From positions 42,904,001 through 42,968,000 of the forward strand of contig CM060731.1 in assembly GCA_030704615.1 (NCBI GenBank): a DNA stretch of 64,000 nucleotides, written 5' to 3'. The notes beneath the pieces are model-generated. The model was not told where the DNA came from and did not search any database. It worked only from the letters and a program-made list of their open reading frames with translations. Origin of the DNA: Takakia lepidozioides (taxonomy: Eukaryota; Plantae; Bryophyta). Below, in pieces: positions 8,641 through 64,000 of this stretch; position 1 is the first letter of the stretch, and every line of letters starts with the position of its first letter. Position numbers and translations under genes: made by a program.

Positions 8641-8644
8641 GAGA

Positions 8645-9049: not shown

Positions 9050-9069
9050 GTGTTCACTGTTCTCTAGTT

Positions 9070-13421: not shown

Positions 13422-20907
<7,486 letters not shown>

Positions 20908-21859
20908 CTTAGTATCTTATTTAGTGTTAAGGTATTCTAACGTAGTTTCTTAGTATTTTCCGGTTTCTTCTGCAGCCTTCCTCGCCATGGATCCTGCCAT
21001 TGCCCAGCAAATGAAGGAGGCAGCATCGAGGCAACCAAAACTAATAAAGCGGGAGAATCCCACCAGTAAAACTGGGTTCATCTCCAGTAATTAATAAAAG
21101 TGAATCTCACGGTGGTTTATCCCTAGAACCGTCCGTTGTGGACGGCTGACGATGGGCGGGCGTCGACAGTATTCACAGAAAGATGCGAGAGAGATATGGA
21201 GGGATTGAAAAGCAGATTCAAGGCAAGTCTGCCTGCCATTGAATCCTTTCAAGAGTCTGACGAGGAGAGTGGGCTTGTCTTGTGAAGTGGATGGAGGAGA
21301 GGTGATTTTGGGAAGGAATTGCTGTGATTTCTTCGCAGAATCTGATCGTTGCATTTTATAGAAATTGAAGAAGATCCTTTTCTTTTCTACGAGATTTTCG
21401 TTTTAGGTTATCTTAAATGCACTTATCTCCGATGTGTTGGAGCTCCTGATTGGGTCCAAGACATGCCACCTCGGCCATCTCGACCATTTCTACCCTCTCC
21501 TCTCAGATGTATGGTTTTCTTCCTTGTTTTACTGTTTGTGACAGCGGCGCAAGGAAAGACTTCCTCTGGGGAAGAAGCAGAGACGGATCCTCGGGAGTGA
21601 GATGTCCATTGTCCCAAGCTCGTGGTGTGGTGGGAGGACGGTGGTGCTAGGAATTGTTCAAGAAGGTGTTTTCTTTGAGTACGTGGAAGATGTGCACTAG
21701 AAGATTCTGCAAACAGGGAGATTGTGGACATTAGAATTCATTGCCAAGGGCATGTGGAGTCACTTTTGTGCTTGTGAGTCTGGCTGGAGATAGAAGGACA
21801 GAGGACATGAAATAGTATTGAGGACCAGCCACACAGAACAGGCGGCGAGATACATCAAT

Positions 21860-23354
21860 ATGGATAGGATAAGGCGAGGGGCAGAGGATGCACTGCGGCA
21901 GGCCTTCATGTCTAAGGATGACTATGCGTCCCTTCGCGAAGAAGACAAAATGGGGAGGAGGATGCAACGGCCACTGGCTATGGCATTCGTAACTTTTGTC
22001 TGGTGTGCAGTCGTGGTGGCCTTGGCTATTATGATCGACATTGTGTTTGCCGTAACCGGCCAAGACTATCCTTTCTGCCAGAAGAAGCGATTGGAGCACA
22101 TGACGATCAATTTGGACCTTGCCCCTTCTGCGAGTGGGGATTCGAGGCGGTCATATCAGCTCACAGAAGTGGAAGCCGCCCAGTACTTTTGGGCTGTGGT
22201 GTTCCTTCCAACCTCTGTCCTCTTTTCGGTCGCCTTAATCTACCTTTTTGCAGGTCAGTTCCTACGCAGCTTCAATTTGATTTTGCTGGATACATATTCC
22301 TACCAAATGTCCATATACGTGTCACTTCACTCCAAAAATTTGGCCGTCCTAACACTTACCGCATCTGTCCTCTAATCTATGGACAGAGGTGAGGGAAACT
22401 ACAGAAGCGTCTCTGCAATGTTTGTTGACTTGTGGAAAGACTTAAGGATATTTCACACCAAATCATGCATCTAATTGTTAATTAGAGTCGGTCACTTGTT
22501 GAGCAACATTGGCATGGTTGGGGCTGTGATATTGGCAAGGGATAGCGGTGGCATATACTGCTCCGCAGAGGCATGGTTGCCTGAAGGTTGTGGAGAACAA
22601 TTGCTGTGCCTCAAAGCGAGGTATGTGGTGATTCTTCCCTTGAAGGCTGGAAGTTTTATGTTTTTTTTTCATACTATTTTCCAGAAGTGTGATGTTGACA
22701 CCAATAGCACTCTGTGAGCTTCTTCATTAGATGCGCATAGGGCTGCTTGTATTTTAGAGAGAGAGAGAGATCCCTTAAGAAATGTTAAGACTGGAAGATT
22801 AAGGTCAGAAGGGTCAGTCTCAGGTGAGATGAGCTGAGCTGAGCTGAGCTGATGTTCATCTTGATAATTCCTTATGTGGGCATGCAGGAGGGGTGCGCTG
22901 CCTGGCCACATTAAACCTGTCGTTTCTGGCAGTATTTGTATTGCTTGCCCTATTCTTGGGCTCAAGTATTCTGACCCTTGAGACAGATTGTTCCATTGCC
23001 CTCTTCTGGTGCTATGAAGTTGTCTGCTGGGGACTTGTGTTCTTATTGGGTGCAACAGCTTTTTTCTTGCATCGAAAGGCTGCTGTAGTTATGGATGAGG
23101 GTGAATGGTATGGTCATCACACTAGGGGTGTGGAGCTCTTGGAAGCAACAGCAGTGCTTCCAGGCCCAGAAATGGAGGGACGCGTTGCCACAGGATTCAA
23201 GTCATGGCTGGGACCGGCAGAAGTTCTGTCATCGTCAGAGGATGAAGAAAGTGGGGCACACCCTGCTGACGGCGGTTTGGATGACGTTTGGGAAGAGGAC
23301 CCTGGGCAGATGTACGATGCGCCTGAAGCCTTTTCAAGGTCAAGGATAGGCTGA
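21860..23354 (+). CDS. Conserved uncharacterised plant multi-pass membrane protein, 3 exons, 313 aa
   Basis: Exons 21860-22253, 22540-22620, 22888-23354 in frame. Motifs AYTAPQRHGCLKVVENNCCASKRGGVRCL, LFWCYE, GFKSWLG and an acidic tail, recalled from a conserved plant family (resembles Arabidopsis At5g11280; from memory). Confidence 0.85.
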
Positions 23355-26300: not shown

Positions 26301-28022
26301 TTTGATTGACCCGGATAATTGTGGACCTCTTGCGATTAGGTGTTTTAAGGAACGTTTGCTTTGAATGCATGTTGTCAATACACAATGCATTGCCTTTTAC
26401 AAAACATGCTTCATGAATTTTGATGAACAGATGAGTTGGAGATTATGTAAAACCTATTTTGCATGCTTTCAACATTTATTATTTCCATTTTTTCTACAAT
26501 AAAAATACATATTTTTTTGCGTTGCAAGACAATGAGGACTATGATTGCGTCCACGTGATGACAAGATCATCATAAAATCATCATTTATTAAGGAAACTCT
26601 ACATCAGCTTTAGATGGTCCATCACCTAATCCAAATAGCAACTACCTCATATCCTTTGAAAACATCTCTATATTGTAAGTACACATCAAATAATTACAGA
26701 GTATCCACAATCCATAGTGGTTGTATTAAAGATCATATCAGCTCAAACAGTGGAAAGATCAATAATTTATGTAATTAGCTGTTCCACTAGATGTACAATG
26801 TAACTCTTGATCCAATATTTTGCAGTCACACCATCAGCCAAGTTGATGTGTAGTTTTTCAAAAGGAAAATTTGGCTGCAAACCTTGTACCATGCGTAACA
26901 ACACTAAATGAAGTACTGAATCAACCCAATGAAAGACCCAAAACTCTATCATGAAGAGCAACAAAGTCTGCTACTTGCAGTGGTTTTATGTGAAAAAATC
27001 AAAACTACAATCTAATTTACACACTCACTACCATACCATGAAGTTTGAGAGGCAGTTTGAAAACCATATCTATTTGTAACATCGACAGCATGCATAAATG
27101 AGTATCCTGGGAAGTCTCACGGGAGTATGTCCAAGTAACTTATACCTACTCAAAACCAAACACTCGAAACTTGTCTACTGTAAGCTTAAAAGGTCGGTTC
27201 TTCCTAATTGTCATCCACATATTTGTCGCATTTGCCTTGCATTTGCAGATGTGAAGCTCTAAAGCGAAGACTTAAACGTGACCGCTTTGGCTCTAGAAAC
27301 CTAATCGGATACCATATGTTGGGATTCGTGAGCTTGTCCTCGTATCCTAATCCCACGAGATCATTACTCTTCTAAGTAAGCAGATGAAAGAAACTCCTTC
27401 CCCCTCACATAAGCTTTTGCGCTACCCAGAAGCTGTGTTCAAGGTCACTCATAATTCAATCCAAAAACCCAAACCTAAAGCATTCGGGTTAAGAATGAAC
27501 AATGAGGATAAGAATGAGCAATGAGGAGAAGGCCTGGCTATGGCTTCTACAATGAATTCCACTCACCGACTAATCCCGGGGTTCTGGTAAATGCTGCCAG
27601 CCCGAACGCCGACATAGCTCCTAATGGGCGCCCTCACCCTCTCACAGAATCCTCCAACTGGATAGTACTACCGTCAACTGTAGAAGAGGGACAGAAAATG
27701 CGCACAAGCGCATAAGAAAAACAACACTAGAGGCAATTGAACTCGACAGAGAAGCTGCAGACTCCTTGACAAGCCCCACTGCGTTCAAATCCACTTATGA
27801 TTGATAATTCAGTGCCAAATTTCCACACTACCCAGTCGCCCTAGATTCAATGACACTACGGCATCCGGAATCTGAGGCTCTCATTCGTCTTCGGAGAAAG
27901 TAAACTCTCGTCTCTAGGTCAAAATATTTAGGGTTAAGTTAACAGGGAGATAATAATCGCGTTTCACGCCACGGGTTGCGAAAATATGAGATTCGTGAAC
28001 CTAGAGCTGCGTTTTTTACGCG

Positions 28023-29149
28023 ACGATGGCGGAATATGCAATGAACCGTGGATCGATTCCAAATTGGGAAATAGATAGCGTGATGCGGTTTGAGCGAAGA
28101 GAGGAAAATGAGGCGAGAACAGAACAAGGCATGAGTGTTGGAATCATGTGTTGCGAATCTACAAACTTGAAAGAATCAAACTGTGGCAGGAATTCCTGCT
28201 TACGTTTCGAACGTCGCGGACTCGATGGGCGACTATTCTTCAGGGTGTCGTCAATCTATGCGCCGCTGCAACGATAGTGGAATATGCGACGAACCGTGGA
28301 TCGATTCCGAATTGGGAAATAGCCCACGTGATGCGGTTTGAGCGAAGAGAGGAAAATGAGGCGAGAACAGAACAAGGCATGAGCGTTGGAATCATGTGTT
28401 GCGAATTTGCAAACTTGGAAGAATCAAATTGTGGCAGGAATTCTTGCTTACGTTTCGAACGTCGCGGACTCGATGAGCGACTATTCTTCAGGGTGTCGTC
28501 AATCTATGCGCCACTGCAACGATGGCGGAATATGCGACAAACCTTGATCGATTGCAAATTGGGAAATAGCCAACGTGATGCGGTTTGAGCGAAGAGAGAA
28601 AATGAGGCGAAAATAGAGCAAGGCATGAGTGTTGGAATCATGTGTTGCGAATATGCAAGCTTGGAAAAATCAAACTGTGGCAGGAATTCCTGCTTACATT
28701 TCGAACGTCGCGGACTCGATGAGCGGCTATTCTTCAGGGTGTCGTCAATCTATGCGCCGCTGCAACGATGGCGGAATATGTGACGAACCGCGGATCGATT
28801 CCGAATTGGGAAATAGCCAACGGGATGCGGTGTGAGCGAAGAGAGGAAAATGAGGAAAACAGAGCAAGGCACGAGTGTTGGAATCATATGTTGCGAATCT
28901 GCAAGCTTGGAAGAATCAAACTTTGGAGAGAATTCTTGCTTACGTTTTGAACGTCGCGGACTCGATGGGCGGCTATTCTTCAGGGTGTCGTCAATCTATG
29001 CGCAGCTGCAACGATGGCGGAATATGCGACGAACCGCGGATCGATTCCGAATTGGGAAATAGCCAACGAGATGCGGTTTGAGTGAAGAGCGAAAAATGAG
29101 GCGAAAATAGAGCAAGGCACGAGTGTTGGAATCATGTGCTGCGAATCTG
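28023..29149. repeat. Tandem array of ~4.5 units of 246-248 bp, CpG-rich
   Basis: Units start at 28023, 28271, 28519, 28765, 29011; palindrome gcaggaattcctgc in units 1 and 3, with variants in the others. Confidence 0.95.
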
Positions 29150-32404: not shown

Positions 32405-35070
32405 TTTTGAGATGTTATAGATCTGTAGCATATCAGCTGGATCTGCAAGCTACTTGGAAAATCCATGACGTCGTTCATGTCAGCCTCCTAAGGAAATATG
32501 TGGCAGACCCTAGTTACATTCTACCTAAACTACCCAAGGTTGTAGCAGAAGGTTGGTTGTTGGCTCCACCTGAACGTGTTCTGGAAACAAGAACAAAACA
32601 TCTTCAAAATCTTCATGTCGTGAACATCTTGTCAAATGGTATCACTATCCAAAATCTGAAGCTACTTGGGAAAAGGAGAGTGACCTACAGTTGGATTTTC
32701 CCCATTTCACTATCATTGCGGACAATGATCAGTATTTTAGTGGGGGAGATTATTATGGCATTCTATATAATCGGAATCAGTTCTGGGTGGAAAAGCCAAG
32801 GGATTGTGATTGAATGACAGGTGGGGGAAACCTGCAATAGTGCCATGTGATGGCCTTGAAAGACAACTGCCAGCTTCAGATGGCCGGTCACCAATTAAGG
32901 AGGTCACCGGTTCATGAACGAGGAAGAAGGCCATTCTGGCAGAAAAAGAGAAGAACAATAACGGACGAGTTCGGGAGATGGCCTAGAGGATAGGAAAGTG
33001 TGATGAGATTATGTACAAGGAATAGTGCACAGTGTGACGGCTGGGTGGACCGGAAGTGGTATCCAGTATTGTGCATTTAGAACGAGTTGATTAGAAATAG
33101 CTATTGGCTTTTGTAGTTTTCAGACACAAGGACTGTGGTTCCTCCCATGTACAAATGATAGTTGTAATACCTGTGAAAATGGTTTCACTAAGGGCAAGGT
33201 TGTAATGATGCAGACTGAATTGGGTTCTTGTCACGATTTGAAAGAAGAAAGAATTGTTATAAGTGGTATCAGAGCCATCTGAGTGATAGGGTAGAAGCGA
33301 GATCAGTTGCGATTTATGAGCCGATTGTCGTTTGGGTCTGAGAACAATGTGCAGTTGAGCTCGTAAGGAAGTTCTGAAGTGATGAAGTGTTATGACGCTG
33401 GTAATTCTCAACGTAAAGAGAGTCAGGTGATTTAGCCCATCTCAAAGGTACAAATGGAGGCTTTGGGCGTTTTGATTCGTTCCGAAGTCCAGAAGCCGAC
33501 ACCTGTCAAATAACGATCTACTATAAAGAGAACCAAAGGGACATCACCTGATAAATCGCGAAGCTACGCCGAATCCCAATCTGACACAAGCTCCTTGGAA
33601 TTTAAGGCAAAGAAGAACAAGGATGTTACTCATGAAATCAAGCAGATGGTGAAGCTACCGGAGTTTGTGGGTAGGACTTCTGTGAAGCCAGAAGAAATTC
33701 TGTCGTTTCTAGAAACACTCGAGGAATTCTTTGAGGAGGATTATCTTGAAGAGGCTCAAATTAGAACGGCAACCCTACAGATCCGAGATGCGGTAAAATT
33801 ATGGTGGTCTTGTCAGAAGAAATAACGTCGTGAACATGACAAACCCCCAATCGATACTTGGGAAAAATTTCGATCGTCGTTCTTGGCTTACTACCTCCTT
33901 GGGAATTACGCTCACAAGGAATGTTGAACTCTTCACACTGAAACAGGAAAATTCAAGTGTGGTTGAGTTCAAGACAAAATTTGAAATGCATGCCAGTTAT
34001 TTCCCAACTCTCAGTGAGGATGACAAGGTAGATTTTTTCATAGATGGCCTGAATGACTCTCTGAAATTCAAGGTCAAGGCCCACAATCCCCGCACTGAGA
34101 AAGAAGAAAGATGGTGGATTGAGTGTGGACTATAGGTGGATGAATAAAATGACAACCAAGAAAAAGTATCCACTTCCCCCATTTTAGATGATCTACTCCA
34201 TCATTTGTATGGGAGTAAATTAGTCTTTTCCAAACTTGATCTGCGACCAGGTTACCACCAGATACAAATTAAAGATTCAGATACACCTAAAACTGGATTT
34301 CGTTCACGCTTTGGCCACTATGAGTACGCAGTAATGCCCTATGGGCTTACCAATGCTCCGGCTACGTTCATGCATTTGATGAACTCTTTGTTTCAAAAAT
34401 ACCTTGGCAAGATGGTTCTTGTCTTTATGGATGATATCTTGGTATTTTCCAAGCATAAACAACATTTGCGAATGGTCTTAGATATCTTAAGATAGAATCA
34501 TCTATTTGCAAAGAAGAGTAAATGTGAGTTCTTTGTGGATCACAGGGACTATTTGGGATTTCATACAAAAATTGACCCAAAGAAGATTAAGGCTGTGGCT
34601 GAATGGCCCAAATCCAAGGATAAAACAGAAGTTAGAAGCTTTGTTGGGTTTGCTAGCTTCTTGCAAAAGTGTGTTAAATCATTCAGCGCCGCTGACTGAT
34701 CTACAGAATAACTCTAGGAGATGGATTGGAATGAAGCCTAAACGCCATATTGTGATATTAGCTTTGAAAAGCTATAGTCTGCATTGACACATGTTCCAAT
34801 GCTGAAATTGATTGATCCTACCAAGGACGAGATTGTGTTTTGCACTGACGCGAGCCATCTCGCTGTTGGAGCAATATTAGTGCAGGTTATTGCCTACGAT
34901 TTTACTCAATCCAGCTCAACAAAATTATCTTGTTCATGAAAAAGAACTTCGGGCTATTATTCACGAAGTGATGATATGGAGGCTTTACATGGTTCATGTG
35001 GACTTTACAATAGAGACCGATCGTGAGAGTTTAAAGTATCTCAGCACACAATCCAACTTGAAGAATATCA
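32405..35070 (+). mobile_element. Degenerate chromovirus Ty3/gypsy remnant in permuted order: integrase C-terminus/chromodomain, PPT, LTR, PBS, gag, RT, RNase H
   Basis: AYQLDLQATWKIHDVVHVSLLRKY; chromodomain HLVKWYHYPKSEATWEKE; PPT agtgggggag ~32739-32748; LTR ~32751-33261; PBS tggtatcagagc at 33264; gag LKQENSSVVEFKTKF; [36 protein letters not shown]; RNase H TDAS..AVGA, HEKELRAII. Confidence 0.88.
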
Positions 35071-36766: not shown

Positions 36767-36963
36767 GCGTAACAGTCAGCAGGTAGTGGATTCTTATATG
36801 GAATAAATGGATTCCATTGCGTAACAGTCGGCAGGTAGTGGATTCTGATAGGGAATAAATGGATTCCATTGCGTAACAGTCAGCAGATAGTGGATTCTGA
36901 TAGGGAATAAACGGATTCCATTGCGTAACAGTCAGGAGGTAGTGGATTCTGATAGGGAATAAA
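36767..36963. repeat. ~3.8 copies of a 52-bp tandem repeat
   Basis: gcgtaacagtc..caggtagtggattct.ata.ggaataaa.ggattccatt at 36767, 36819, 36871, 36923. Confidence 0.92.
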
Positions 36964-37973
36964 GAGCCCCATATTATGCCGACGAGAAAAGGTGACGATT
37001 GTGATTCTGCCGAGTAATAATAAGATATGTTGGCCTCAAATCATGGGTTGGAGAAGGGAACATTGTAATTATTATTGGGATCTAAAAAATGGGGATGGAT
37101 GAATGTTGTACCATGCCAGAGCTAGCATGCATCCATGTGCTTGTTTTTTTTCCTTTTCTCCGTTTCCTTAAGGGGTTGAGTTTAGGGCCATTAGCATGGA
37201 TGAGCAAGTGGTGATAGAGGATGAACAGGTACGTATCATTCATGGACGGGACTGGAATCCATCCCTGAGCAGCCGGCAACGGTGTCAGGGGGAAAGCGCG
37301 GGGGGGAGGAATGACGGCCGCTAGTTTCCCGGGAGGTGCTAGATTCGGCGGCAGTCGCTTTACAGCTCTTAAACCGCGTGACGAGTATTTTAGGCAGCCG
37401 TGTTGATGCGTGTGCGCACACGGATCGACCTCCATAGCTCCACATCACTCGCGTTCATATATCGCTGCAGCGAGACCAGCTTTCGATCCACCTGCAGATT
37501 GGAACCTTGCAGTTCTATCATCATCTCCTCCATGCTTCATCATTGTACATCATTTTCATCATTGGGGGTCAAACATATGTAGAGTTTTTGCTCGCAGTTT
37601 CGTGTGGGGAGATGCTTATTCTCCCTGGCAAGACTTGCGATAGGTATCGAACTTAGAGAATGCTCAAGCATTGAAGCCGATCCGAGTTTCTTAATTAATA
37701 TACACTTGTGTGGCCACCCTGTTGTCCCTATGGCTACCCAGAGTCTTCAGCAAATTCAATTTTTGTTCCTCTCTTGGAGTGGTAGAATGGGGGTAGCTGG
37801 GTTCATATGAGCTCTCATTAATTAGTATGATCTCAGGGCTGGCCATTGTCAATGACAATCACAGGAGGTCTGGCAAGCACAGCATAACTTGTGGGAACTA
37901 GAATAAAATGAAATTGGTAACACCTAGACCGAGTTGCTGATTTTCATAGTGAAGAAACTCCTTTACCGGAAAG

Positions 37974-40306
37974 TCAAGGGGAAGTGATTTTGGAGTACAG
38001 TATCAGCATGATTTCACCGCCATTATCGAACACCCTTTCGAGGTACCTCCTCAAGTCACGTTCCCCAGCACAGAATTTTACTGGGGAATGATTCTTACTG
38101 TCCAGATCAAACCAATCGCCGAGGAATTTCCGGAAGGCGACCCAATGTCCCGATCCGTTGTCTACAATGAGGCCCAGGAGTCTGGGACCATATACCCTCA
38201 AGTTCAATCCTGCAAGACCATTGCGGGGATCCATCTGGACCACCACCATCCCCTTCCCCTCCATAGCTCTAACTAGCACTTGCTCATCATACCATCCTAA
38301 GAATTTGTTATGGTGACTGCCGAAAATCTTGCGTAAGAAGGGGGTTGACTCATCATGCCGTATTGACTCTGCGATACTATCCAGTTCCTTTCGCGTGAAT
38401 GCGGGATCCTGTATCAACACCAATCAGTAATGAAAAAGTGCAAACAAATCTCATATGATTTTGCCATACTGCGTAGAGAAAGAAACAGACAAACGAGAGA
38501 GGGAGAGAAAGAGAGAGCACGAGTTAACTTCCTTCGTGTGGTTAGATGTGGGTTTTTCCCAGAGTGGGTATGGGCAGAGTTTGAGTTTCAACGACGTAGA
38601 GAAAGACTCCCGATACGTAAGGGTGTACGTCCTCTTCCTAATTTAGCAAACAAATAAACAGAAGAAAGAGATTAAGAAACTTTAAACGTCGACACAGGGC
38701 CCAGCCACCAGATAGGAACGAATGTAACAGTCCAAGAGCGCCGTTGCAAATGAGTGATCCTGGTGTGAAGCCCTACAACAGGAAATGAGGCCAAAGCAGG
38801 GACCAGGGTTGCGAGCAACTTCACGCATTTCTCGCCGGGATGTTATGGCTGACAGGCCGTGAAACAAATTTATGTCTTGATCTCCTTTCTGTAGGTGTGA
38901 TCCGGTTAGATTAAAAGATAAGAGGGTGGAAGAGTGAGCCAAATCACGTCCCACCTAAAAGGAGACATTCAAGTGAGAGGGAGGAAGGTTGCAAATTGTG
39001 TCCAAAAACGGCTTCACCTCGATGATCCGCAGCCCGGATTGCAGCAGTAGCCAGCCAAATGGGAAGCCTGCTTTTCAAAGCCTAGGTTGCGAACAAGGAC
39101 ACTATATTATGTTTGCGAGGTGTCGTAGTGGGCTCTAGACAATAGAATCGTCTTCAACCGGAGTGAAAATTCATGAGTCGGTCGTCATCCACAGCAGGAG
39201 CCTTGCTTCTAGTCGCCCTTTTGTCATTACAACTCCGAGTTTGAACTAGATTTGTACCATCCAGCGACGGATAGAATCATAGACCGTCGACCTCTAACCT
39301 ACCGCCAAGAGAAACGCACTGATCATATTCGAATCATATCATCACTACTTCTATCCACAATCTAGATACCGAGAAGTTATTGCAGGTTACGCCCACTTTT
39401 GGACTTTGAATGCCACCGACTCAAACTGTGATAATCAAGTTCGGTTTGCACTCACTACCATTTTGAAGCAGCTGTAATACAACAACATCTGTCTGTTTCT
39501 AAAGCCCTTCTAAAGAAGTATGTCTCCTCGTAGAGATTGATAACTCAGCCAAAGATTTTAATCTTCCTCCCATCATAAATTCCAGACGGTTTTCAATTTT
39601 CAAAGATAAGTTTGTGGCGAGCCTAGTAATGGCGCATCATGTTATTAAAGCAGGAATTTCCATGTCTTAAATTAGGGAGGCTGTTATTAAAGCAGGAATG
39701 GCATCGAAATTGAGTAGATTCTCTTTTTAGGAGAATTGTGGGCCCATCACCAATGATCCCACAACCTTGGCTTTATTCTGGCAGGCACATTCTTCACATT
39801 CTGGTGGCAGGGAAACGCACCTGCAAGAGATTATTCATAGCATGTAGAAGACCTAACTGCAATCGCTGCTTCTCGTGGTAAAGCGTGGCGCAAACAGGTA
39901 ACGGATCCCTGGGCCCCTCTCCCTCTTCAGGAACTTCCTCTCCAGGTCCTAAGTCTTCAAGCTGATATTCATGATTCACACACTGCGCACAACTCCCGCT
40001 CCCTGGCGTATCCCAACCAATGCCCAACTGATACGAGAACAACAACAACGACACAACTCCAATCGAAATTCCTGCAATACAATGCCGCTTCCTCCCCTGG
40101 AAAATGAAACTTCTTTTCGGAACATCTGTCTCTTTCCCCTTTTCAGAATTTTCTACTCTGGTTTTGCTTCTCCGTTCTCTCTTGATTCTCGGACTCCCGA
40201 CTCTCCTCCGCCTCGGCCGTCCTGGACTTCTCCCTCTCTCTACCGTCCTTGGTCGTCTCGATGGGGATCTACTGCCCGACCTCGAAGCCCGCTTCCCAGC
40301 GGCCAT
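37974..40306 (-). CDS. Josephin (MJD)-domain protein with Arg/Ser-rich N-terminus and predicted TM helix; catalytic Cys replaced by Gly; 2 exons, 306 aa (alternative in-frame ATG at 40360)
   Basis: Exon1 40306-39821 ends LYHEKQRLQLGLLHAMNNLLQ|gt. Exon2 38408-37974 DPAFTRKELDSIA...GWYDEQVL...GHWVAFRKFLGDWFDLDSK. Phase-0 GT-AG intron, no internal stops. Confidence 0.88.
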
Positions 40307-40439
40307 GCCCAACCGCCTCCTTCTCTCCCCCTTCTTCACACACCCCCAACACCTCCACATTCATCCATGCTTCATCCACGGAAGCAATTTTCTTTATTTT
40401 CTTTCAATAAAAGAGAAAAACATTTAGTACAATTAAATT

Positions 40440-40794
40440 AGTTTTTTTTTTTTTTTGCTAACAGGGAGAAATTCTTAACTTACAATTCCCTGTTCTCTGG
40501 TGGACGAAATCGCCAAACTTCTCCAAATAAAATATAAATTATGGATGAATTTTCCATATAAATGGATGAAAATACAGAGTATGGAAAATCATTAACTTAC
40601 CTGTTTTCTGATGGATGAAATCGCCAAACTTCTCCAAAAGAAATATAAATTATGGATGAATTTTCCAAATATGGATGATATAAATGGATGAAAGTACAGA
40701 GTAGGATGATTCTATCCAGTGGAAATATGGCTATTTCTTGCAAAACTCAGTAGCCACTCCTGTTATTTTCCAAATTTCAAAAACAAAAACACTG
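40440..40794. mobile_element. MITE-like repeat related to the hAT-type MITE at 56578-56736, with an internal duplication
   Basis: Shares atggatgaaagta, ggatgattctatcc and ttgcaaaactc.gtagccactc.tg.tatttt; ends aaaaacactg. Confidence 0.65.
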
Positions 40795-41272
40795 TCAAGT
40801 CGGGTAGCGACACATCAGGTCAGTAATATGTAGGGACAAAATATAAAAAGAAAAGCTTAAGGGGCTACAAGCGGGGGCGATTGATGTTCGAACCCGGGAC
40901 GGGCCAGCCCGCAGATCGCTAAGTAAAGAGTTAGCGGCGTTTTAATAAGTGTCTAGTGTTATAATACGTCGTATGATACGGTGGTGATGCAAATACGTCC
41001 CGTCGCGCCGCCACGGGCAGTCACTTTCTGGATTTGACGTCATCCATTTTATTACGACAACCAGGCAACCCGTTCGTCTTCCTCTCTCGCTCTCTCTCTC
41101 TTTCTCTCTTTTCTCTCTCTCTCTCTCGACTTGAGAGATTGAGGCTGCGGGCGTGTATTGTTGGGGTCTTTCGGGGATTGTTGTATGTGTTCCAGATGTG
41201 TGGCTTTGGTGGAAAGTCATCCTGCGGGTGTGTCTCATACTTTGGGCCGTGGTTTGTTGTTTCCCTCTTCCA

Positions 41273-42169
41273 ATGGCACCTAGGAAAAATCGGCAGAGGA
41301 AAGCCGTGCCTGAGCTGAAGTTGCCATCTCCACCTTCGGTTCCCTCGTCCGTAGAGCTTCCGTCTCCTCCAGAAAGTGAAAATCTTGGGCCTGATCCACC
41401 TTCAGATAAAATTTCTATAAGATTCCAGATTCTGTACACAGAAGTCTTTCGGGAGCTTAACTTTTCGGAGCTTCCGGTGGACGCAGTGGCTAGGAACCTG
41501 CCTCACTACGCTGGATTTATTGATAGCTGTCACTTGTTGCTGAATCACTACGGGGTTAGCTCTGGTCAGCATTTCGGGGTGAAGTTCATTCCTCAAGTTG
41601 GGGAGAAGATCGCTGCTTCATCATGGTCCAAGATGGGCGGTGCCACTATCATGTTGTATCCCATTACTGAAGCCCAGGTCCCGCTGTACAAGCAAGCTCA
41701 GCATCTGCAGTACATGGAAATCCCTGGGATGGTAGGTGCTCCTCTCTACAAGCAAGCCCAGCACTTACAATCCATGAGCACTAATGAAAAAGTTGATGCC
41801 TTGCTGAAGGTGGTTGAGCCTAAAGCCACGGCAGAGCCCAGCAGTACCGGAGAATCCAAACTTGTTGATAGTTTGACCCAACAGGTCAAGGAGCTGGGAA
41901 GGCTAGTGGCTGCCATGCAGGACGAGAATAGGGAGAGGATGGAGGAATTGTACAGGGAACTTGAGGAGTTCAGGGGGGTCATCGAGGAGCTGAAGAAGGA
42001 GAGGGTTGCAGGAAAAGAGTCTATCGAAAGAGAGCTATTCTTTGAAAGCCGTGCAGGTTTCGCTTCTGCCGGGCCGGAAGAGCTTGATGGGAACTGGAAA
42101 CCAGCCCGCAGTGTCAGGAAGCAGCGGCCCAGCGTCTCTCGGTGCGAGAACTGTGCTCAGCGCTTGTAA
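41273..42169 (+). CDS. Intronless orphan ORF, 298 aa: Pro-rich N-terminus, small globular region, duplicated PLYKQAQHLQ motif, coiled coil
   Basis: ATG in caATGG context downstream of a (TC)n-rich leader; the duplicated motif differs only at synonymous sites; heptad-like LTQQVKELGRLV..MEELYRELEEFRGVIEELKKE. Confidence 0.6.
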   Translation: MAPRKNRQRKAVPELKLPSPPSVPSSVELPSPPESENLGPDPPSDKISIRFQILYTEVFRELNFSELPVDAVARNLPHYAGFIDSCHLLLNHYGVSSGQHFGVKFIPQVGEKIAASSWSKMGGATIMLYPITEAQVPLYKQAQHLQYMEIPGMVGAPLYKQAQHLQSMSTNEKVDALLKVVEPKATAEPSSTGESKLVDSLTQQVKELGRLVAAMQDENRERMEELYRELEEFRGVIEELKKERVAGKESIERELFFESRAGFASAGPEELDGNWKPARSVRKQRPSVSRCENCAQRL

Positions 42170-43899: not shown

Positions 43900-46800
43900 T
43901 CAGAATGGTGGAGTGGGGATATAACCCTTGCCAAATGCTGCTATGAGAAGAGCCTCAGCTCGGCCTGCACACCAACCAACCTCATGCTATTAGCCTTTAT
44001 TTTTCAGAACTTGGGCAGTTACCAGGGTCTTCATACATGTCGAGCAAGGGCTGTATGCAGTTCTGAACAAATATATACCCTAGTAGCTGAATGTGCTCAT
44101 TAGGCCTCCAACCATCACTAAAGTATAGTCCAGTGGGGCTTACTTTCAGAAACTAAATTGAATGCAGACAGATCGAGTGCCACATCTTTCAACTTGTATC
44201 CCAGCAAGCGAATGCCGAACCATGAAGAGTGAAAGTATATTTGTGTACTTCTATACCATCAGAGCAGGTTATTATATAAGATTGGGTGACAACTTAAGTA
44301 TGAAATTGCCATACGACTTTTCATGTCAAAGAACATCCATAGAGAGAAGACAGATTTAATACCTCTGAAGGACAAATAGAGAGGATACAACAGCGCCTTG
44401 ACTGAAAGGAAGATCAAACTTACCATGGTCTTTCTTCCGCCGGAGCTGTGGAGACAAAGCCGGGAACAGTGATGACGCCAGGGCCCGACTATCATCCTGC
44501 GCCCTCAACCTCAGTTTTTTCCAATTTAACCCTGCGTACAAGGAATATGTTGACAGCATTGATGTCAAGAAGGGTACCAAAAACTGTTTTACTACTGGTA
44601 GTACGAGATGATCAATACCTTGCTGTACTCTCTACCAGCAATTCCCATGGCAGCCTTCCACGTCTGTGCTCGCACTGGCACCACCCTGAATCCCAAGGCC
44701 ATCAAGATACCAACCCAGACTCCATAGCCAAAGCCTGTGCCATACCATCCCTGCATCACACGGTGCTTTTGGTGACAATGCCTTCATGGAAAGGTCAAAG
44801 TCAATACAACAAAACTCAGGTTTCCAAACAAACGAATCCGAAACAAACTCCTCTGCCTCCTTTACACTTTAATACTTTTCCCTTCCCTTAACCCCTGAGC
44901 AGACACCCTTCTGAGCAGTGCCTCATGAATCTGGGACAACAACACATTCTGCAGTCAGTACAGCTGGATTGTAGCATTTCCAACACATACGTGCACATCC
45001 GCATGCTACTAAGAAAGTAGTTTTGGGTTTGCTTACTGGCCTGCTTGCCATCCTTAGCAAATGGCATGGCCTGTTCCACATATGCCACACTTCCTGCAAA
45101 CTTTGGAACCCTCCATGGTCAAAAAAAGACACAGCATCAACTTCAATACACAGACACATCGAGATGGTGACTCACACACACACAACATGCGTACTCTTAA
45201 AGGAAAAACGTATGCCATCTCCAAAGCTGTGTTACATGAGATAAGTCACAGAGAGTACCCTGGGGTGCATTGAGTTGATGCATCATGGTAACAATTGAAT
45301 GGGCATCATGACGGCGGCGCATGGTTTTGCCAACCATCACTTTCACACATGGCACATCAATTACCTGCTCAATCCATGCCAATTATTTCACTTACATGCA
45401 GGATTTGTGCTGCCTAGACATATTATGAGACCTCATCTCTGACTGAAGGTCACTGTTATTTGCAGAACAGCGTGGAGGTGTTGATCAATCCCCAATACCA
45501 TAATGTCATGCATTGCCAGAGCTATCCAGCAGGAGAGTGGTAGAGCACACCACCCTTCCCCAGAAAAACAAAGGAGGGGAGAGAGTAGAAGCCAGAAGAG
45601 AGCATGTAGACCTTAAAATATGGGAAAGCTCCTACGGGCAATTTACAAGCCTGAAAAGGCCAACCCACACAAAGCTTGCTACAAGTAAAAAGCACCAGAG
45701 GGGAACAAGAATGCCTAGAAGACAAGCTGTACACCAAGTAAAGTGCAGCAGTAGCAAACACAGACTTCTATTTGCAAACTGCCAATATTTGGAGGAGAGT
45801 TGCACCAATGAGGATAATGCACAGTATGCCTTTATTCTCTGCATCTGGTGTGGTTATCATTCCCTGGCCCTGCCAGGGCAGCATTTCTTGGTTGCCAAGG
45901 TTGTGATTGAGGGTTGGGGCTCATAAAGCTTGCTTGGGATTGTTACCCTCTTTCCTCACCAAGAGAGTAGAAAGAAAGAAAGATTGGGTCGGCAGAAGGC
46001 CCAAAGGACCCAAGGGACAGAGAACAAGACAGCGAGAAGAGAGAGAGAGAGAGAGAGAGAGTTCTGACAGAAGTCGTACAGCAGAATAGGGAGGGAGAGA
46101 AAAACTAAGCAGCCTACCTCAGCTTGGGTGCCCTGTTCCTTGAGCACAGCTATCGCACCGGATACATCGGGGTCGATACCAACTACACACACATCTCCTG
46201 GAGTCCCAGCCACCTGAACATCAAGAGTCCAGACCACTGTTTGTTTTCAAGGCTGAAGGAAGAGCAAGCCTAATCCATCACTGGTAAAACCCTGACAATT
46301 AGATCCCACAAGATCCCAGATTCGCCCAATAAACTTTACATGAGTCCTATGTCTATACTCCTAAAGATCGCACTGATACTCAGGAAAGTAGAGCAGCATA
46401 TTGACACCATACGGAAATCGTAGAAGTTCACCATGAAGTCAAAATCGAACGATTTATTTTCACCAAATTCACCATCCGCATGTACCACAAATGCTCCCCT
46501 TCAAACCTCATTGCATTCTTCAAGAAGTCATACCTCTCCATTGGCATTGATAACACCAATAGTTTCCAATTCGAGTGCCACTTCATCATCTTCTGGATCT
46601 GAGCATCCTTCCACATTTTCATTGGGAAGAAACAAGGGCGGAACCTCAACACCAATGACCAAATTGCGGGCAAGTGCGCCATTGGTAATCCCTAAGCTTT
46701 TCTCAGTCCCCTCCACAACGTCAATGCTCTTTGCCTGCAATGGAGATCCCCCCCTCCTTGAAATTTTTCACATCTGCTTAGGAGTTCTTTGTGAATCCTG

Positions 46801-47330: not shown

Positions 47331-49518
47331 TCTGTATGCCCTCAGGGTGGTGAGCTCACCCCTGCCTGCCCAATGTTATCTACTTTCGAAAGGACACGAT
47401 TGAAAAGTTCTGCATAGACATAGTTCTCGACTCGCTGTTTCATATTTCACCTCTCTCTGTCCCTCTGAGACTCTCTCGCTCTTTGGGGTTTACTGCTACC
47501 AAACTACTCCAACCCATGACTAGTGAGTACATCCCGCTCTCCCACTCCACTCAATGCTGGAAATTCAGGAAGCACTCACGCCATCTCTAGAGCTGAATTT
47601 GATCCGCCACAAGCAACTGATGTGATCAGGTGAAGATTGCTGTTGGGTTGCCTGAACCCATGAAGATGAATCACACCCAAAAGAGAGAGAAGGGCCTGGA
47701 CCAACGAACGAGAAACGGAGACGCTGGAAGAAGGACAAACAGACCGAGAACTAGATCCTCATACATGAGAACGTGAGAACTGCAAGAATGGGAACGTAGC
47801 CAGGCATCCGGAAGGGTCCGAGGCCAATGACCAACGGTCTCCTCTAGGAGGTTATCCACCCCTGTCCCTCCTAGGAATTATGGCTTGCTTTCTCTTTGGT
47901 ATGAGATCCTGAGAGCAGCGCATTGAATCGCTTGGAAGATTGTGAGAGAGGGTTACAGGATCAGATTGAGGATCAGGCTGCAGGAAGCAAGGAGGAAGGG
48001 GGACTGGGGAAACACCTGCTCGGCCGCCTCCACGAGGGTCCGTCCACGAATCCTTTGTTTTTTGTCTCGTGGGTTTTACAAGAGAAACCGATTTTTTCCA
48101 CACTTTTTGCTGTGGAATCAGCCGCAATCCACACCTGACATGAATTCAGGGTTTGATGTAAGGGCTGGAAAGTTTCAGGACACGAAAGTAAGTGGTTATC
48201 CCAACACTGCTGCTCTACAATGCGCGTGGATTGGGCAGTGCTGTTGTAGCCACAAATTCGATTACGGCAGGTGTGTATGCGAGAATGTTTCACTCATTGA
48301 TTCAATGCTTGCAGGGGCTGATCGCAGCTGCGGGCTCCCCAACAGACGTCGAGGCGATTGTTGCTACCGCCTGCCTGCTCTGTCACCCTCATCCAAGACT
48401 CCATCTGGTTAGGTTTTCATGTGTGTGTGTGATATTAGAGAGACAGAGGGAGCGAGGTGCTTCTGTGTGTATGAACTAGTATTCCTGTTTCTTGCTCTTC
48501 TCCCGGTAACTCCAGTATTCCAACTCCCATAAATTGGGTGAGGAAGGATTTTAGGGTCAGGTTTCGAAGGGGGCATTAAATCCCTCACTTTTTGTGATGA
48601 AGGGTCACGACGTCTTCTCTATAAACTCGTGGATTCTTTGTTTCTCTATCTCCAGTCACTGTGTCATTGGTAGAGTGCCTGCAAATTGTCCCCCATTTAT
48701 GTTTCTATGTCATTGTCCAGGAACCTGATTAAAAGCCCCAAACCTTTCTGTGAAGAATGACATGCCCTCAAATCAGCAGCAGGAAAGGTGCAAACATATA
48801 ATTTACGCCAGCAGGCAGCAAATCTCTCTTTCTTTTGTGTCGTGAATGGATTCATACCTGCCCATACTCATTGTGACTCCCACTGCTGCATTGTTAGTAA
48901 CCTGCTGATTATGAACGCATTTTTGAGGTTCTTCTTTATCATTTGTTGTTCAGAATGTGATGGGTATTGCTGAAAGCAGAGTTAGGGAAGTATGTCGATT
49001 TTCACAGAAACTTGGCTCCAGAATGTTCACAAATTTGGGTCACCAGGCCCTTTAAGATGAGTTGATCTGCTGTCTATTACAATGCAATAGGTCTCACTCA
49101 CACCACAGCCCCAAGGTCGTCTCCGATTTCTGGCACCAGTTCATGTGAGGATATTGTTTGTTTTGATTCAAGTTCAACTTCTTGAATACTTTGGTCCGCT
49201 AAGTCCAACAACCACCCACCTGAACTTGGAGTTCTCCAGCTCATCTGAAAGAGCAAAGAGAGATCTTCTTCATTTGTCTATTCAATCTTCCAAGCACAAA
49301 ACAATCCAACCAAATCTCTTCGAGATGCACAGTACAATTAGAAGTTGATGTGGTTTGAACCAAACTATTCAAGTGACTATCCAAGCAGAGCCTAAGAACA
49401 TAGAACGCCCAGAACAAAAATTAAGAATCACTTGTCAATTCTGCTCTTTCTTCCATGTACATGACCTTGCTTACCTTTCCTAATGTTTCACTGCAGTCAA
49501 AGAAACAAGACCAGGGCG

Positions 49519-51729
49519 ATGGTAGTCTCAAACGAAAGGTTGTTGCCGGAGTACTTGTATGGCAGTCAAAGAGCAGTGGCAGCACTAGCAGGATTGAGAC
49601 CTGCTCCTCAAACAAACTCATTTGTTCACGAGTTGTTCACACGGTTCACCGGCGCGAAATGCGTCGCAAGGAACAACAACCATAGACGACTTGCGGACGA
49701 TCAAAGATCCAAGTTCCTAATACCCGCCGCAAGCGAGGCGGGTGGAATTCCAATGTATTCCGCAGAGTTTTATGCTGCATGCACGATTGGTGGCATTTTG
49801 AGCTGCGGCATCACACACACGGCTGTGACGCCTTTGGATATTGTCAAGTGTAACATGCAGGTATACAACATAAATCTCACAATTCTTGCCCCATTGTGAT
49901 CCATTCCCTGCCACAAACTTGTTGAGTCCAGTCACAAATCTCTGCCCATATCGTAATTCTGTTTGACGAGTCTTTCAGATCGATCCGGGAAAGTACAAAA
50001 GCATCGGTGGTGGCTTCAGCACGATCCTCAAGGAGCAAGGTGCAAAAGGGTTGTTCAAAGGCTGGGCGCCGACTCTAGTCGGATACAGCTCGCAAGGAGC
50101 TTGCAAGTTTGGATTGTACGAGTTTTTCAAAAAGTACTACGGAGATTTGGCAGGAGAGCCCTTCGCAACGGATTACAAAACGTTGGTGTACTTAGCAGGC
50201 GCTGCATCGGCCGAGTTCATAGCCGACATCGCTCTGTGCCCCTTCGAGGCCGTCAAGGTCCGCGTGCAGACCAAGCCCGGCTACGCTCGCGGCCTCAGCG
50301 ACGGCATGCCCAAGTTCATCGCTGCCGAGGGTTTTGCCGGGTATCTTTCCATTCCTTTTGCTCTCTTTCTGTCTGTGCAATCAACTCTCAGTGTACATAA
50401 AGAATACACAATCTAAGTATTTGTGGATCAAAACTATAACTGTGCTCTAACTGTAATTTTGCTCTCAAAGAATATGATCTACTGTAACAGAAAGGAGATG
50501 TGGGTATCCCTGAAATCTATCAAATAAAATGGAAGAAGAAGAAGAACCATAGCTTACATCAGTTGTGGTTGTGTACTCAGTCTGTACCAGGGTATTGTGC
50601 CACTTTGGGGGCGACAAATTCCTTGTAAGTAACGGCTTAAAAAAAAATTCTCTAATGAATCCCTTTTCTTATGATCAGAAGATTGTTTGCAAGTATTATT
50701 ACCGTATGGGTTGTCTCTTTTATCAAAAAAAGAGACAACAAAACAGAACAAAACAAAACAAAACCATATTCAATATGAAACTGATGGATTCTAAAGAACT
50801 AACAACATGGGTGGTGTGATGAGTTTTGGAACTAGCTTCAAATAACTGGTTGGTACAAAGTGGGTATCATTTTCTATAATTTTTTACACAATGTTGTATA
50901 TATGCACTTGCTGAAGATTGGCTCAGTTGGCTCAATCTATCAAAGGGTAATGAATGGCCTGAATTGCCTGAAAATCATTCTATGTTGGCCTGAATGGTTT
51001 GTTTTTAAGAAACTTTTGCAGACACAATGATGAAGTTTTCTTGCTTTGAGAGTACGGTGGAAGCATTGTACAAGTATGCGGTGCCCATGCCTAAGGAAAA
51101 ATGTTCCAAGACTACCCAACTGGGAGTCAGCTTTGCTGCTGGCTACATTGCTGGAGTGCTTTGCGCCGTGGTGTCGCATCCAGCTGACAACCTGGTGTCG
51201 TATTTTAACAACAAGAAGGGTGCTACTGTTGGTCAGGTACAAACTACAAACATCATTGAAAACACATTTTATCCTGACCTTCCTTTAATTAATTGAAGCC
51301 ATACCTCTATGTCTTAGAAAGAAAAAAGTACAAGTTAGTTGTCCGTGTATCTCGACTTGTAACGAAAGACGAACGTGCTCCAAGTGTTCTTGCAATATGG
51401 GTGCAGGCAATAAGTGAAATGGGCATGGTTGCTTTGTTTACACGAGGTTTGCCTCTTCGAATTGTGATGGTGGGTACCCTTACTGGAGCACAATGGGGCA
51501 TCTACGACGCTTTCAAGGTTTTTGTAGGCTTGTAAGTCCCCTCAACCGAAAATGTTTCAAGTTAAATGATCATTTGAGGAGGTTAATAATCTTTGAGAGA
51601 GAGTTTCATGAGAAATGATTGATGATTTTGTTCATGTTGTTCAGGCCAACAACAGGTGGTGCTGCACCCACACACGGCAAGCCTGCTGCACATGGTCATG
51701 GAACAACCAAGAGTGGCAAACCATGTTGA
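49519..51729 (+). CDS. Mitochondrial phosphate carrier (MPT/PiC, SLC25 family), 6 exons, 390 aa
   Basis: Exons 49519-49860, 49979-50340, 50581-50624, 51022-51236, 51407-51531, 51645-51729. Motifs [86 protein letters not shown]. Confidence 0.96.
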
Positions 51730-53588: not shown

Positions 53589-55859
53589 TGCTTGGGAGCA
53601 TAGTTTTACTTATTTCTTTGCATAGATATCCATTTGAAGAATAACTTTGGAAATGTCCATCTAAGCCCAAGTGTAATATTCTATTCATGTATCCAAATGC
53701 TTCTCCCATGTAGAGGCCCAAGTGCGACCTCCAGCATCCAATGTCATCTAAGCCCAAAGTGCAATCCACTATGCATCCGGAGACCCCGCAGTTTGGGAGA
53801 TCTTCAGGTCATTGTTCCAACAAAGCCCACTTTGCTATTTTTGGCATCTCCCATATCGAGGCTTCATATATTGATATATCCACTTTACTGCTATTTTTCA
53901 TGAATTTCCAGCAACCAAAAGCACTTGAAATTCCAAATCTCCCACCTGAAGGGCCAATCACTACTCCAGGAAAGCCCACTTTGCTAATTTTTCTAGTTCC
54001 TCTACTGACTTGCGTCGGCCCTCAATCTGGACCTCTATCCCTGGTCCTTCAACTATCCCTGCCTATGTACAAATCATGAATACATCCTCAACCTTGCTGC
54101 TAGCAGCTAACACTGACGGCCTGAAGTTCTTCCAGCAAACACCCCAACCCTACTTATTACAGTAGTTCCAATTCTGAATTGCATTCTGCTTCTCTCTGTA
54201 GTCCAATAGGCATTCACCTTTTTTGTCTCCATTGTCCCACCATTGTCTGGGGTCCGAAAAGTGTCCATTCCAAAGCTTCTCCTCATCTCTGTTATCTGTT
54301 TTTGGATACTTTCCTGCTGCCATATCGGCAATAACTTGTCAAAGTCACTCCAAACCACCACAAATCCGCCCAACGAGCTAACTTACAGAATTCAATATGC
54401 ATCTCGAATCTGATGAGAGGGCAAAACAGGCTGAAAATAGGTTGAAGAAGGTGCTCTTCCTTCTGAGTAGTCATGGTACGAAAAATTTGATGGAATTCTC
54501 GGAGGCACGACAAAAATTGAATGGGATTCCTGGAGGTATTGATCAGGGAGTACGCAACAATCTTCCCCAAACCATTAATCTTGATGATGTTGCATTCGTG
54601 TCAAATACACAATTTGATCAATGTCTCATCTACGACATACTCATGTATTTGATGGAGAAACTACTTCTGGAACAACACCAAATGTGACGGCAACCACCAC
54701 ACCCGATGATCCTTCGGCTACACCCGTCACTCCTAAGACGACAACTTACAAGTTGTCGCCACGTTTGATAGCCAAAAACCCAGCAAGACAATTTTCTGTT
54801 ATAAATTTTCTTAACGATTCAAAAAGCTGCATATGGACGTCACATCTTCCTACGCCAACTGTACATAAAACCTCAATGGCTTTTGATGCAATTCTGTCCT
54901 TCGTTGTTGTAAGATTCATAGGTCGCCCCCTCCCTCTCTTCCCACACACTTCTGCTGTTCATTGCCTCCATGTTGGGTTCGTACTTCTCCTTTCATCGCA
55001 TTTTGTATTGCTGACCCCTCGTAGCTCGCCTCTGCTACTGTGCACTACGTTGACCTCTTAAGTTGGTACAGTTATACGCGACTATCGAAACTCCATCATC
55101 TAGAACGTTCTTTATTCTAGAATGGGGGGCAGTAGCCGTAAGGCGAAGTGGCTCTTAGTTACGCCGGCTATGGCCGGAGTCTTCTCTCTTCTAGAATGTT
55201 CGCCAAATCTCACTTGGGCATGGACTGCATATGGGCCCGCATCCACTGGCTATGTGGGGCCCTTGCAACCTACCACATGATTCAGACAAACTTGTAGATG
55301 TCATCTGGCTTTTTTGTCGATTTTATTTTTCCAACGACTAGGGTACATATAGAAATGGATGGAAAAACTGAGGGACTGAAGTACAACACACATGAGGGTA
55401 CGGCCAGGACTGATCAGCCAGAGGATCAACCTTGTGGGACCCAACGGATGTGGGGGCGGACATCCGCCCTTACCTGCATACACATGGGCGGATCAAATCC
55501 CATGACTCATCCACTAGGTGAAATCGGGCAAAATTCACCGTAGCAAGTTGGTCGTCTCTCTCATCTCCACAGCACCCACGCCACTCATCTTAGTGGAAAG
55601 CTTTACATCATGGAGTATTAAACCAGGTCTGAATGAAAGAGATTCGTCATCTTTGCCACTCATTACAGATTACATATTGAAAAAAACGCACAAACTTGTA
55701 GCATAAATTAGATTCATTACAAAAATGGAGAGGCTTTTCATTGGAAATGTCATTTTGGTATGGGTGCTTATGTCTGTGACCTTAGGGAATTGTTTGATAG
55801 TCAAATCAAATGCGAAACTTATTTTCGGAGAGAATGAGGGTTTTCACTGGCATATCGAT

Positions 55860-56400
55860 ACTTGCCAATTTTGGTGGCAATTTGTAGAAAGAAGAGAAGG
55901 CATGCACGCACGTGGTGGAAGGAGCCTAGACAGTACACACTGGGAATTGATAGGAGACACAAGTTTGGTATGTTACCCCAAGTTTGGTCAGAGACAAGAA
56001 ATTTCTACGGAATTATAGAAGACATATGATGCTTTCAACAATTTGGTTGATGAACTTACGCCATTTATTAAGTCCACTGCATTAAATTTTGTAAGACCAC
56101 AAGTGGAGATCCGAAAGATTATAGCAGTTGTTCTCTATCGATTCGAAAATGATATTTCCCAAACCATAATGGCAGACCGATTCAATGTTGGTGCGTCCAC
56201 CATACACAAATATATTGACATTGTTTGTGTTGCTCTCATGACACCCGAATGTCTATTTAGCAAGTACATTGACACACCCACATGAGAATGATTAACAGAA
56301 TTATCCATGTTTTCAAGCAGATTACAGGGTTGTCTAACAACGTTGGCGCCATCGATAAAACCCATATTCTTCTTGCAGAAAAGCCGAACAAGAGGGTCAC
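55860..56400 (+). mobile_element. PIF/Harbinger transposase remnant
   Basis: LVDELTPFI...KIIAVVLYRF..ISQTIMADRFNVGASTIHKYIDIVCVAL (HTH) and VGAIDKTHI (GAIDGTHI-type DDE motif), with stops and frameshifts. Confidence 0.8.
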
Positions 56401-56577
56401 CTTGAGAGAATGAACTATCCCGACCTGTTTGCTAATTACTTTGAAGAATGTGCAAGGTGATTCTCTCTGTCATCGCCATCTTTAGCGTCTCCATCTCTTT
56501 GATCCTCTCACCAAACTCTTAGGATACTGTTTGAAGAATTACGAATGCATTTCAAGTCTTCTAGCCCTAATGTCACG

Positions 56578-56736
56578 CAGCGTTTTTTTAAATATGGATG
56601 ATATCAATGGATGAAAGTATGGATGTGGATGATTCTATCCTAATTTGAATGGATGAACAAAGTATATGCCTAATTTTTGCAAAACTCTGTAGCCACTCGT
56701 GCTATTTTTCGAATTAAAAAAAAAAAAAAAACTCTG
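56578..56736. mobile_element. 159-bp hAT-type MITE
   Basis: TIRs cagcgtttttt / aaaaaactctg; 8-bp flanks atgtcacg (56570-56577) and atgtcatg (56737-56744). Confidence 0.75.
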
Positions 56737-58214: not shown

Positions 58215-58416
58215 GCTAGCGAAATCTCTTATTTCGATGAAGAAACCCATTATTGGTTGGTGAAATCCATTATTTTGTTGGAGAAACCCATTATTGGCTG
58301 GCAAAATCCATTATTTCGCTGGAGAAATCCATTATGTGTCGGCAAAATCCATTATTTCGTTGAAGAAACCATTATTGGCTGGTGAAATCTATTATTTCGC
58401 TGGAGAAACCCATTGT
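58215..58416. repeat. ~20-bp minisatellite with an alternating ~41-bp higher-order pattern
   Basis: (aa(c/t)ccattat...) units alternating tgg.tgg and ttcg.tgga variants, about 10 copies. Confidence 0.85.
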
Positions 58417-58486
58417 TTGTCTCATTATATTTATAGATATGTGGAACATAGAGCTTGAAAATATACATTAAGGGTGCCTATTTTCA

Positions 58487-61480: not shown

Positions 61481-61610
61481 GTATGGCGGACTCTGTTTCT
61501 TCCCCTGTGAAAATGGGGAATGGTTTGTCTCTCTGCAGAAGGATTTTCTAATAGGTGCAGCACAGAGGAGGACGGAACAAAGGGCAGGGAGAAAGGGGCC
61601 GAAAGGAGCT

Positions 61611-64000
<2,390 letters not shown>

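Follow-up and report, generated by a model that had tools for sequence, protein, structure and literature searches.

A Predicted Membrane-Anchored Pseudo-Josephin of Takakia lepidozioides and Its Conserved, Probably Bryophyte Subfamily

A two-exon gene of the moss Takakia lepidozioides encodes a Josephin domain in which the cysteine nucleophile is replaced by glycine and which is preceded by a predicted membrane anchor. Sequence comparison identifies it as a likely member of a conserved subfamily of pseudo-Josephins with a membrane anchor, which probably belongs to the bryophytes. The gene lies within a stretch of 64,000 nucleotides that was analysed at its full length, hereafter the window. 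The subfamily is real, conserved and apparently undescribed. No dead or transmembrane (TM) member of the Josephin (MJD) family was found described in the searchable literature outside subscription journals. A review of 2014 (PMC3928566) counted plant Josephins among the proteins without functional characterisation. Database searches, within their limits, retrieved no annotated full-length member of the TM-type family, so that plant deubiquitinase inventories probably miss members.

Its lineages can be read as successive steps of enzyme death, with the Cys lost in all and the catalytic His in some, and would thus offer a natural series for the study of pseudoenzyme evolution. The combination of a Cys-to-Asp exchange and a membrane anchor in plants parallels animal OTULINL. 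If the domain were luminal, a fold of the ubiquitin system would be at work in a place free of ubiquitin, which is rare.

Gene Structure and Genomic Context

Exon 1 (39821..40306, minus strand) comprises 162 codons and encodes a basic tail, a TM segment, a CxxC motif, an acidic stem and the N-terminal Josephin box; it ends in phase 0 at a GT donor. Exon 2 (37974..38408, minus strand) adds 144 residues and a TGA stop and supplies the remaining Josephin domain, in which the helical hairpin is shortened and the loop that precedes the catalytic His has a deletion of nine residues. The phase-0 intron between them (38409..39820, minus strand; 1412 nt, GT..AG) occupies a position that the homologues and canonical Josephin genes of plants share. 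Both exon frames are open in the window sequence, and the uninterrupted spliced reading frame described by the initial annotation is thereby confirmed in the assembly. The two exons were searched and folded separately.

The 140 codons ahead of the domain would be open in just 0.05% of base shuffles. The start codon at 40306 has the context GGC-ATG-GC, matching that of the L001/L006 homologues, and a further in-frame ATG at 40360 stands in a poorer one. A hidden intron or a later start within exon 1 was ruled out, there being no in-frame internal ATG ahead of the domain box. Transposon or UTR read-through as the origin of the N-terminal extension was also ruled out, since the neighbouring high-copy repeat stops upstream of the ATG, the homologues carry the same motifs and, among the filtered read-contig records, no other contig with 80% or more likeness covers 40192-40385 or reaches deeper into the gene. 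The same records contain neither exon a second time at that likeness. This repeat (40386..40790, no strand assigned) is short and MITE-like, reaches about 1000 times the single-copy contig depth, begins roughly 80 nt upstream of the ATG and constitutes a non-coding context. It recurs at 56584-56640, contains a 122-nt internal duplication and is present in presumed-RNA ('RNA?') runs.

Host genes are represented elsewhere in the window by exons of a GH1 glycosidase (16563-16994, minus strand), a membrane protein with no Pfam match (21818-23354, plus strand), a mitochondrial carrier (49483-50400, plus strand) and an I29/papain protease (61404-62231, plus strand). The stretch at 45956-46237 (minus strand), also without a Pfam match, is presumably a host exon resembling the start of MOC1 resolvase. 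Head-to-head with the Josephin gene lies an open frame of 338 aa (41153-42169, plus strand), with a Pro-rich start, a coiled-coil-like end and no convincing Pfam match; a diverged second copy exists elsewhere in the genome, and it is possibly transposon-derived. Repeats comprise at least two decayed LINE-like copies about 4.6 kb apart (394-10273), with 141-nt internal tandem repeats and a common 3' end followed by CT runs; Ty3/Gypsy fragments with RT-like and other pol pieces that contain stops (32407-34787, plus strand); and long imperfect inverted repeats about 3.6 kb apart (53757-57533), possibly a decayed DNA transposon. Tandem arrays at 28020-29149, 36767-37015, 58212-58451 and 59204-59415 have units of about 247, 52, 20-21 and 70 nt, respectively.

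The Josephin Domain and Its Catalytic Residues

Exon 2 matches the Pfam Josephin family (PF02099) with an E-value of 8.7e-17 and 61.8 bits, against a curated cut-off of 26, and human JOSD2 (PDB 6PGV) with an E-value of 1.6e-6. The AlphaFold model of a canonical liverwort Josephin confirmed the JOSD2 fold. As for features of ataxin-3, Pfam reports no UIM match in the window protein, whose reading frame stops directly after the domain.

The nucleophile position is held by Gly152, encoded by GGT (39851..39853, minus strand), and the assembly sequence thus agrees with the initial annotation on this codon. The oxyanion-hole residue Gln147 (39866..39868), the triad His (38145..38147) and the triad Asp (38100..38102), all on the minus strand, are retained in the window gene as had been claimed; Asp103 of exon 2 follows His88 by 15 residues. 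The Asp is kept in all homologues. Retention of the His holds for the window and the L005 lineage but is no family trait, since two of the four lineages have lost it, carrying Thr/Met or Leu instead.

The initial annotation had noted that the GGT codon is one base from TGT. It is equally one base from the GAC or GAT that encode Asp in the homologues, and a recent origin from TGT does not have to be assumed. Canonical genes have TGT or TGC (TGY) at this site, and the series TGY, GGT, GAY makes Gly a one-step intermediate.

The retained Gln, His and Asp could conceivably activate water and confer a Cys-independent ubiquitin esterase activity on the window protein, an explanation to which we give very little credence. 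In its favour, such activity is reported for some deubiquitinases, with OTULINL weakly active (2026 preprint, 10.64898/2026.10.20.760496); the same preprint reports that JOSD1 with Cys changed to Ala is inactive. The absence of the His from two of the four lineages further means that esterase activity cannot be the conserved function of the family.

Other changes distinguish the clade from active Josephins. In all clade members the loop before the His falls nine residues short of its length in canonical plant Josephins, and several residues invariant in canonical proteins are lost across the clade: the Asn of YDxNV, the Trp equivalent to JOSD2 W86, the Arg of W-x-D-R-R and the Asn before the loop. 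In JOSD2, Trp86 contacts ubiquitin via water and backbone atoms (PMC7337049). Most of the H-x-N..G-x-Y-D stretch beside the ubiquitin-tail groove is preserved, and active ataxin-3 likewise has a tight pre-His turn; the clade may therefore still bind ubiquitin.

Two extra cysteines flank the domain. Cys139 (39890..39892, minus strand), four residues ahead of the YHE motif, is present in all TM-type homologues and absent from the canonical Josephins retrieved. The second, ten residues past the triad Asp, belongs to a family-specific [FY]C motif (38070..38072, minus strand). The pair occurs in every TM-clade sequence that covers both sites and in none of the canonical matches.

The Region Preceding the Domain

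The initial annotation had noted a basic tract, a hydrophobic segment, a CAQC motif and an acidic Pro/Glu linker within the approximately 140 residues that precede the domain, and all four are indeed present in the window sequence. The Arg/Ser-rich N-terminal tail (aa 1-75; 40082..40306, minus strand) has a net charge of +22 and is predicted to be disordered; its basic character alone is common to the homologues. It is followed by a single hydrophobic segment (aa 76-98; 40013..40081, minus strand), whose last residue is a family-invariant Trp. The TM call is based on hydropathy and AlphaFold: Kyte-Doolittle hydropathy averages 1.9 over 19 aa within a run of 23 uncharged residues, and AlphaFold, given exon 1 alone, predicts a helix at 73-96 with a pLDDT of 89 over residues 81-90, the most confident helix in a model of otherwise low confidence. 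On these grounds, the window protein is predicted to have a single signal-anchor helix.

The Trp also opens the family motif W-x5-G-[GS]-C-x2-C (aa 98-109; 39980..40015, minus strand), whose spacing is identical in all exon 1 homologues. The motif arose in 15 of 1,000,000 shuffles of the window pre-domain region (chance 1.5e-5), and it has one match across the six frames of the window. An acidic Pro/Glu/Gly stem follows (39896..39979, minus strand). Outside the motif, pre-domain similarity between the window protein and its homologues is weak (5.5 bits; p 0.002-0.012 against shuffles).

Homologues, Phylogeny and Selection

Neither exon 2 nor the exon 1 reading frame gave a match in word-index searches, and the ESM Atlas contained none for exon 1 and only ordinary Josephin clusters for P0002. 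An exhaustive search with exon 2 produced 51 matches, consisting of Cys-bearing canonical Josephins, Riccia foremost, and the fragments P0002, P0007 and P0015, which have the short pre-His loop of the window protein and a Phe-Cys motif. In contigs of the P0002 cluster, an exon 1 lies about 3.5 kb upstream, and the intron position is that of the window gene. This exon encodes a basic Ser-rich tail, a TM segment, the Trp, CxxC, an acidic stem, Val-Cys and a Josephin box with Asp at the nucleophile position. A profile built from the P0002-cluster exons led to a further lineage, L015/L016, which repeats this layout and has Asp at the nucleophile position and Leu in place of the His. The full exon 1 layout together with the Cys-to-Asp exchange was seen in L001/L006/L007 and in L015/L016; for the L005 lineage, exon 2 only was recovered. 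The initial annotation had proposed a search for orthologs with a TM segment and a Cys-to-Gly exchange; the TM-bearing homologues recovered, from two further deep lineages, have Asp and not Gly at the nucleophile. The sources include environmental assemblies and the contigs are unannotated plant sequences; the homologue lineages are probably mosses. No relatives were found among viral contigs and bacterial genomes.

In the exon 2 tree, the window, L005, L001/L006, L015/L016 and P0015 share one branch (support 91/93, unstarred; 93% of bootstrap trees). An AU test did not reject a placement of the window exon 2 with the canonical liverwort Josephins of Riccia and Calypogeia (p 0.20). Given this result and the weak similarity outside the motif, membership of the window gene rests mainly on shared derived features, which we consider strong evidence. 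The clade is nested among plant Josephins in the exon 2 tree and shares its intron position with plant genes, and the window gene descends from plant JOSD-type genes.

P0015 (L017 464-931) is a clade member that has also lost the G-x-Y-D groove motif and is possibly further decayed or frameshifted. Exon 2 of L001, L005, L015, L016 and P0015 closes with a Pro-rich linker and about 12 residues of Trp-rich tail, an ending absent from the window protein. The canonical Riccia fluitans Josephin (L024 10001-10702) is intronless, unlike that of Calypogeia and the other plant genes examined, and possibly a retrocopy; it has a hydrophilic N-extension of 55 aa.

A gene for a DAO-family oxidoreductase lies tail-to-tail with the pseudo-Josephin in L001 (7458-8420), L005 (2021-2926), L015 (12723-13697) and L017 (2537-3271), each on the minus strand, and is a usable synteny marker. 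It is about 66-68% identical among L001, L005 and L015, and the shared neighbour indicates that the four are orthologous loci of well separated lineages. The 64-kb window does not contain it, and no synteny with canonical liverwort Josephin loci was found.

The ratio dN/dS, for which the initial annotation took a value near 1 as the mark of a young pseudogene, points to purifying selection in the homologues, with exon 2 values of 0.14 for L015/L016 (dS 0.73) and 0.19 for L001/L006. From the TM segment onward, exon 1 gives 0.20 for L015/L016, the best-resolved pair, and 0.42 for L001/L006, where changes are few. The TM-type Josephin family is old and has been maintained as protein despite the lack of the Cys nucleophile. 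The earlier proposal of an undescribed repurposing holds in that the TM segment, CxxC, acidic stem and nucleophile loss are common to two other deep lineages; shared architecture and purifying selection in the homologues show that the repurposing is conserved and no recent one-base knockout.

The window copy itself might nevertheless be special, either through an assembly error at GGT, in which case it would be an active TM-anchored Josephin, or as an unexpressed pseudogene of the family. We consider this improbable. In its favour, the read-contig records, which are filtered, have no contig across 37282-40385 except a low-depth patch at 38446-38639 and hence do not show GGT. Two presumed-RNA runs of the species contain none of the sampled words of the gene, the terminal branch of the window in the exon 2 tree is long (1.11), a high-copy repeat occupies the promoter, and the Trp-rich C-tail of the homologues is absent. 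Against it, the homologues also lack the Cys, and the 306 codons, the two splice sites, the start context and the family motifs have all stayed intact, even though synonymous sites have diverged from those of the homologues to saturation or close to it. Furthermore, 0.98-0.99 of the sampled gene words are present in four DNA runs, which derive from one sample, possibly the source, and in which a single wrong base would escape. Editing of the transcript offers no way back to cysteine, G-to-U changes in nuclear mRNA being implausible.

Membrane Topology and Candidate Function

In all members the N-tails are net basic and the stems net acidic, around hydrophobic cores of 19-23 aa. The type II topology that the initial annotation predicted is favoured by the flanking charges of the window protein (difference C minus N of -6) and of the L001 clade (-2 to -3) but slightly disfavoured in L015/L016 (+2). 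N-glycosylation sequons show no conservation across the clade.

Our leading reading, put forward tentatively, is that of a type II protein of the secretory pathway with a dead domain that is crosslinked by disulfides and engages a protein or peptide partner in the lumen or apoplast. The gene is an ancient duplicate of the plant JOSD-type Josephin gene, as intron position and exon 2 tree show; its exon 1 acquired the basic tail, the signal-anchor helix, CxxC and the acidic stem, and its nucleophile was lost, as is seen in three lineages. The codons may have passed stepwise from Cys (TGY) through Gly (GGY) to Asp (GAY), with loss of the His later; if the window branches first, as it seems to, stepwise decay would be the simplest history, given that the window gene keeps the His. 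The tail would face the cytosol, and the stem and Josephin domain the lumen or apoplast, at the ER, Golgi or plasma membrane. The four family-specific cysteines (those of CxxC, one before the domain and one near its end) may form disulfides; an oxidising compartment would select the gain of paired cysteines together with loss of the catalytic one. With catalysis lost and no ubiquitin at hand, a protein or peptide could bind in the conserved substrate groove, and the molecule would act as a membrane-tethered pseudoenzyme scaffold or receptor. It is conceivable, with the same reserve, that bryophytes early in their evolution sent a cytosolic ubiquitin-processing fold into the secretory pathway, where new disulfides stabilised it, and that it has persisted for hundreds of millions of years as a dead anchored binder in the lumen or cell wall.

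In the main rival reading, which is rather less likely, the protein would have the opposite orientation (N-out/C-in) and act as a cytosol-facing, membrane-tethered pseudo-deubiquitinase, an MJD counterpart of human OTULINL/FAM105A, with its extra cysteines Zn-bound or S-acylated; it would bind ubiquitin or ubiquitinated cargo, or scaffold membrane contacts. OTULINL combines a Cys-to-Asp exchange with an N-terminal membrane motif and ER localisation (PMC7862380). The flanking charges of L015/L016 favour C-in, the groove motif is mostly kept and the Trp-rich C-tail of the homologues could lie on a membrane surface. This orientation would require a net-basic N-tail of 30-75 aa to cross the membrane and conflicts with the charge difference of the window protein, and several of the canonical-invariant residues lost are near the ubiquitin site. 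As OTULINL itself lacks ubiquitin binding, a cytosol-facing topology need not imply a ubiquitin reader.

Alternatively, the tail might direct the protein to an organelle and the helix act as a stop-transfer segment, which would place the dead Josephin, with CxxC oxidised, in the mitochondrial intermembrane space or the plastid envelope. The tails of the window protein and the L001 clade begin with Met-Ala, are rich in Arg, Ser and Thr and, as we take it, resemble transit peptides. In L015/L016 the tails measure only 32-39 aa and open with an RKRR cluster, and tail sequences are not conserved, which renders this destination doubtful at best.

Comparison with Known Systems

The closest relatives by sequence are JOSD1/2-type Josephins such as those of Riccia fluitans (KAL2644054.1) and Calypogeia fissa (CAM6100882.1), which share the domain and the Gln, His and Asp positions with the window protein at 35-45% exon 2 identity; the genes of Calypogeia and other plants also share its intron position. 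In contrast to them, the window protein lacks the catalytic Cys and has an extension of about 140 aa with TM segment and CxxC, two extra cysteines, a pre-His loop nine residues shorter, a shorter hairpin and the loss of several invariant residues. None of the canonical Josephin matches that could be scored has a hydrophobic N-terminal segment. JOSD1 is targeted to membranes yet active, and consists of the Josephin domain only (PMC7337049).

OTULINL/FAM105A is likewise an inactive paralogue of an active deubiquitinase, with the nucleophile changed to Asp as in our homologues and a membrane motif at the N-terminus; neither CxxC nor paired cysteines are reported in the available portion of the source (PMC7862380). 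It belongs to the OTU family, whereas the window protein is a Josephin by Pfam and PDB sequence search, and the likeness would be one of convergence.

For a luminal domain, the nearer likeness is to inactive papain-fold proteins outside the cell. TINAG and TINAGL1 derive from secreted cathepsin-type proteases, whereas the ancestor of the window protein would have been a cytosolic ubiquitin enzyme. Their non-catalytic papain-like fold is active at the cell-matrix interface (PMC10318531) and provides, by description, a precedent for the luminal reading of a dead papain-like fold. By analogy, the TM-type pseudo-Josephin may work most like OTULINL; were its domain luminal, inactive papain-fold proteins outside the cell, TINAG among them, would be the closer model.
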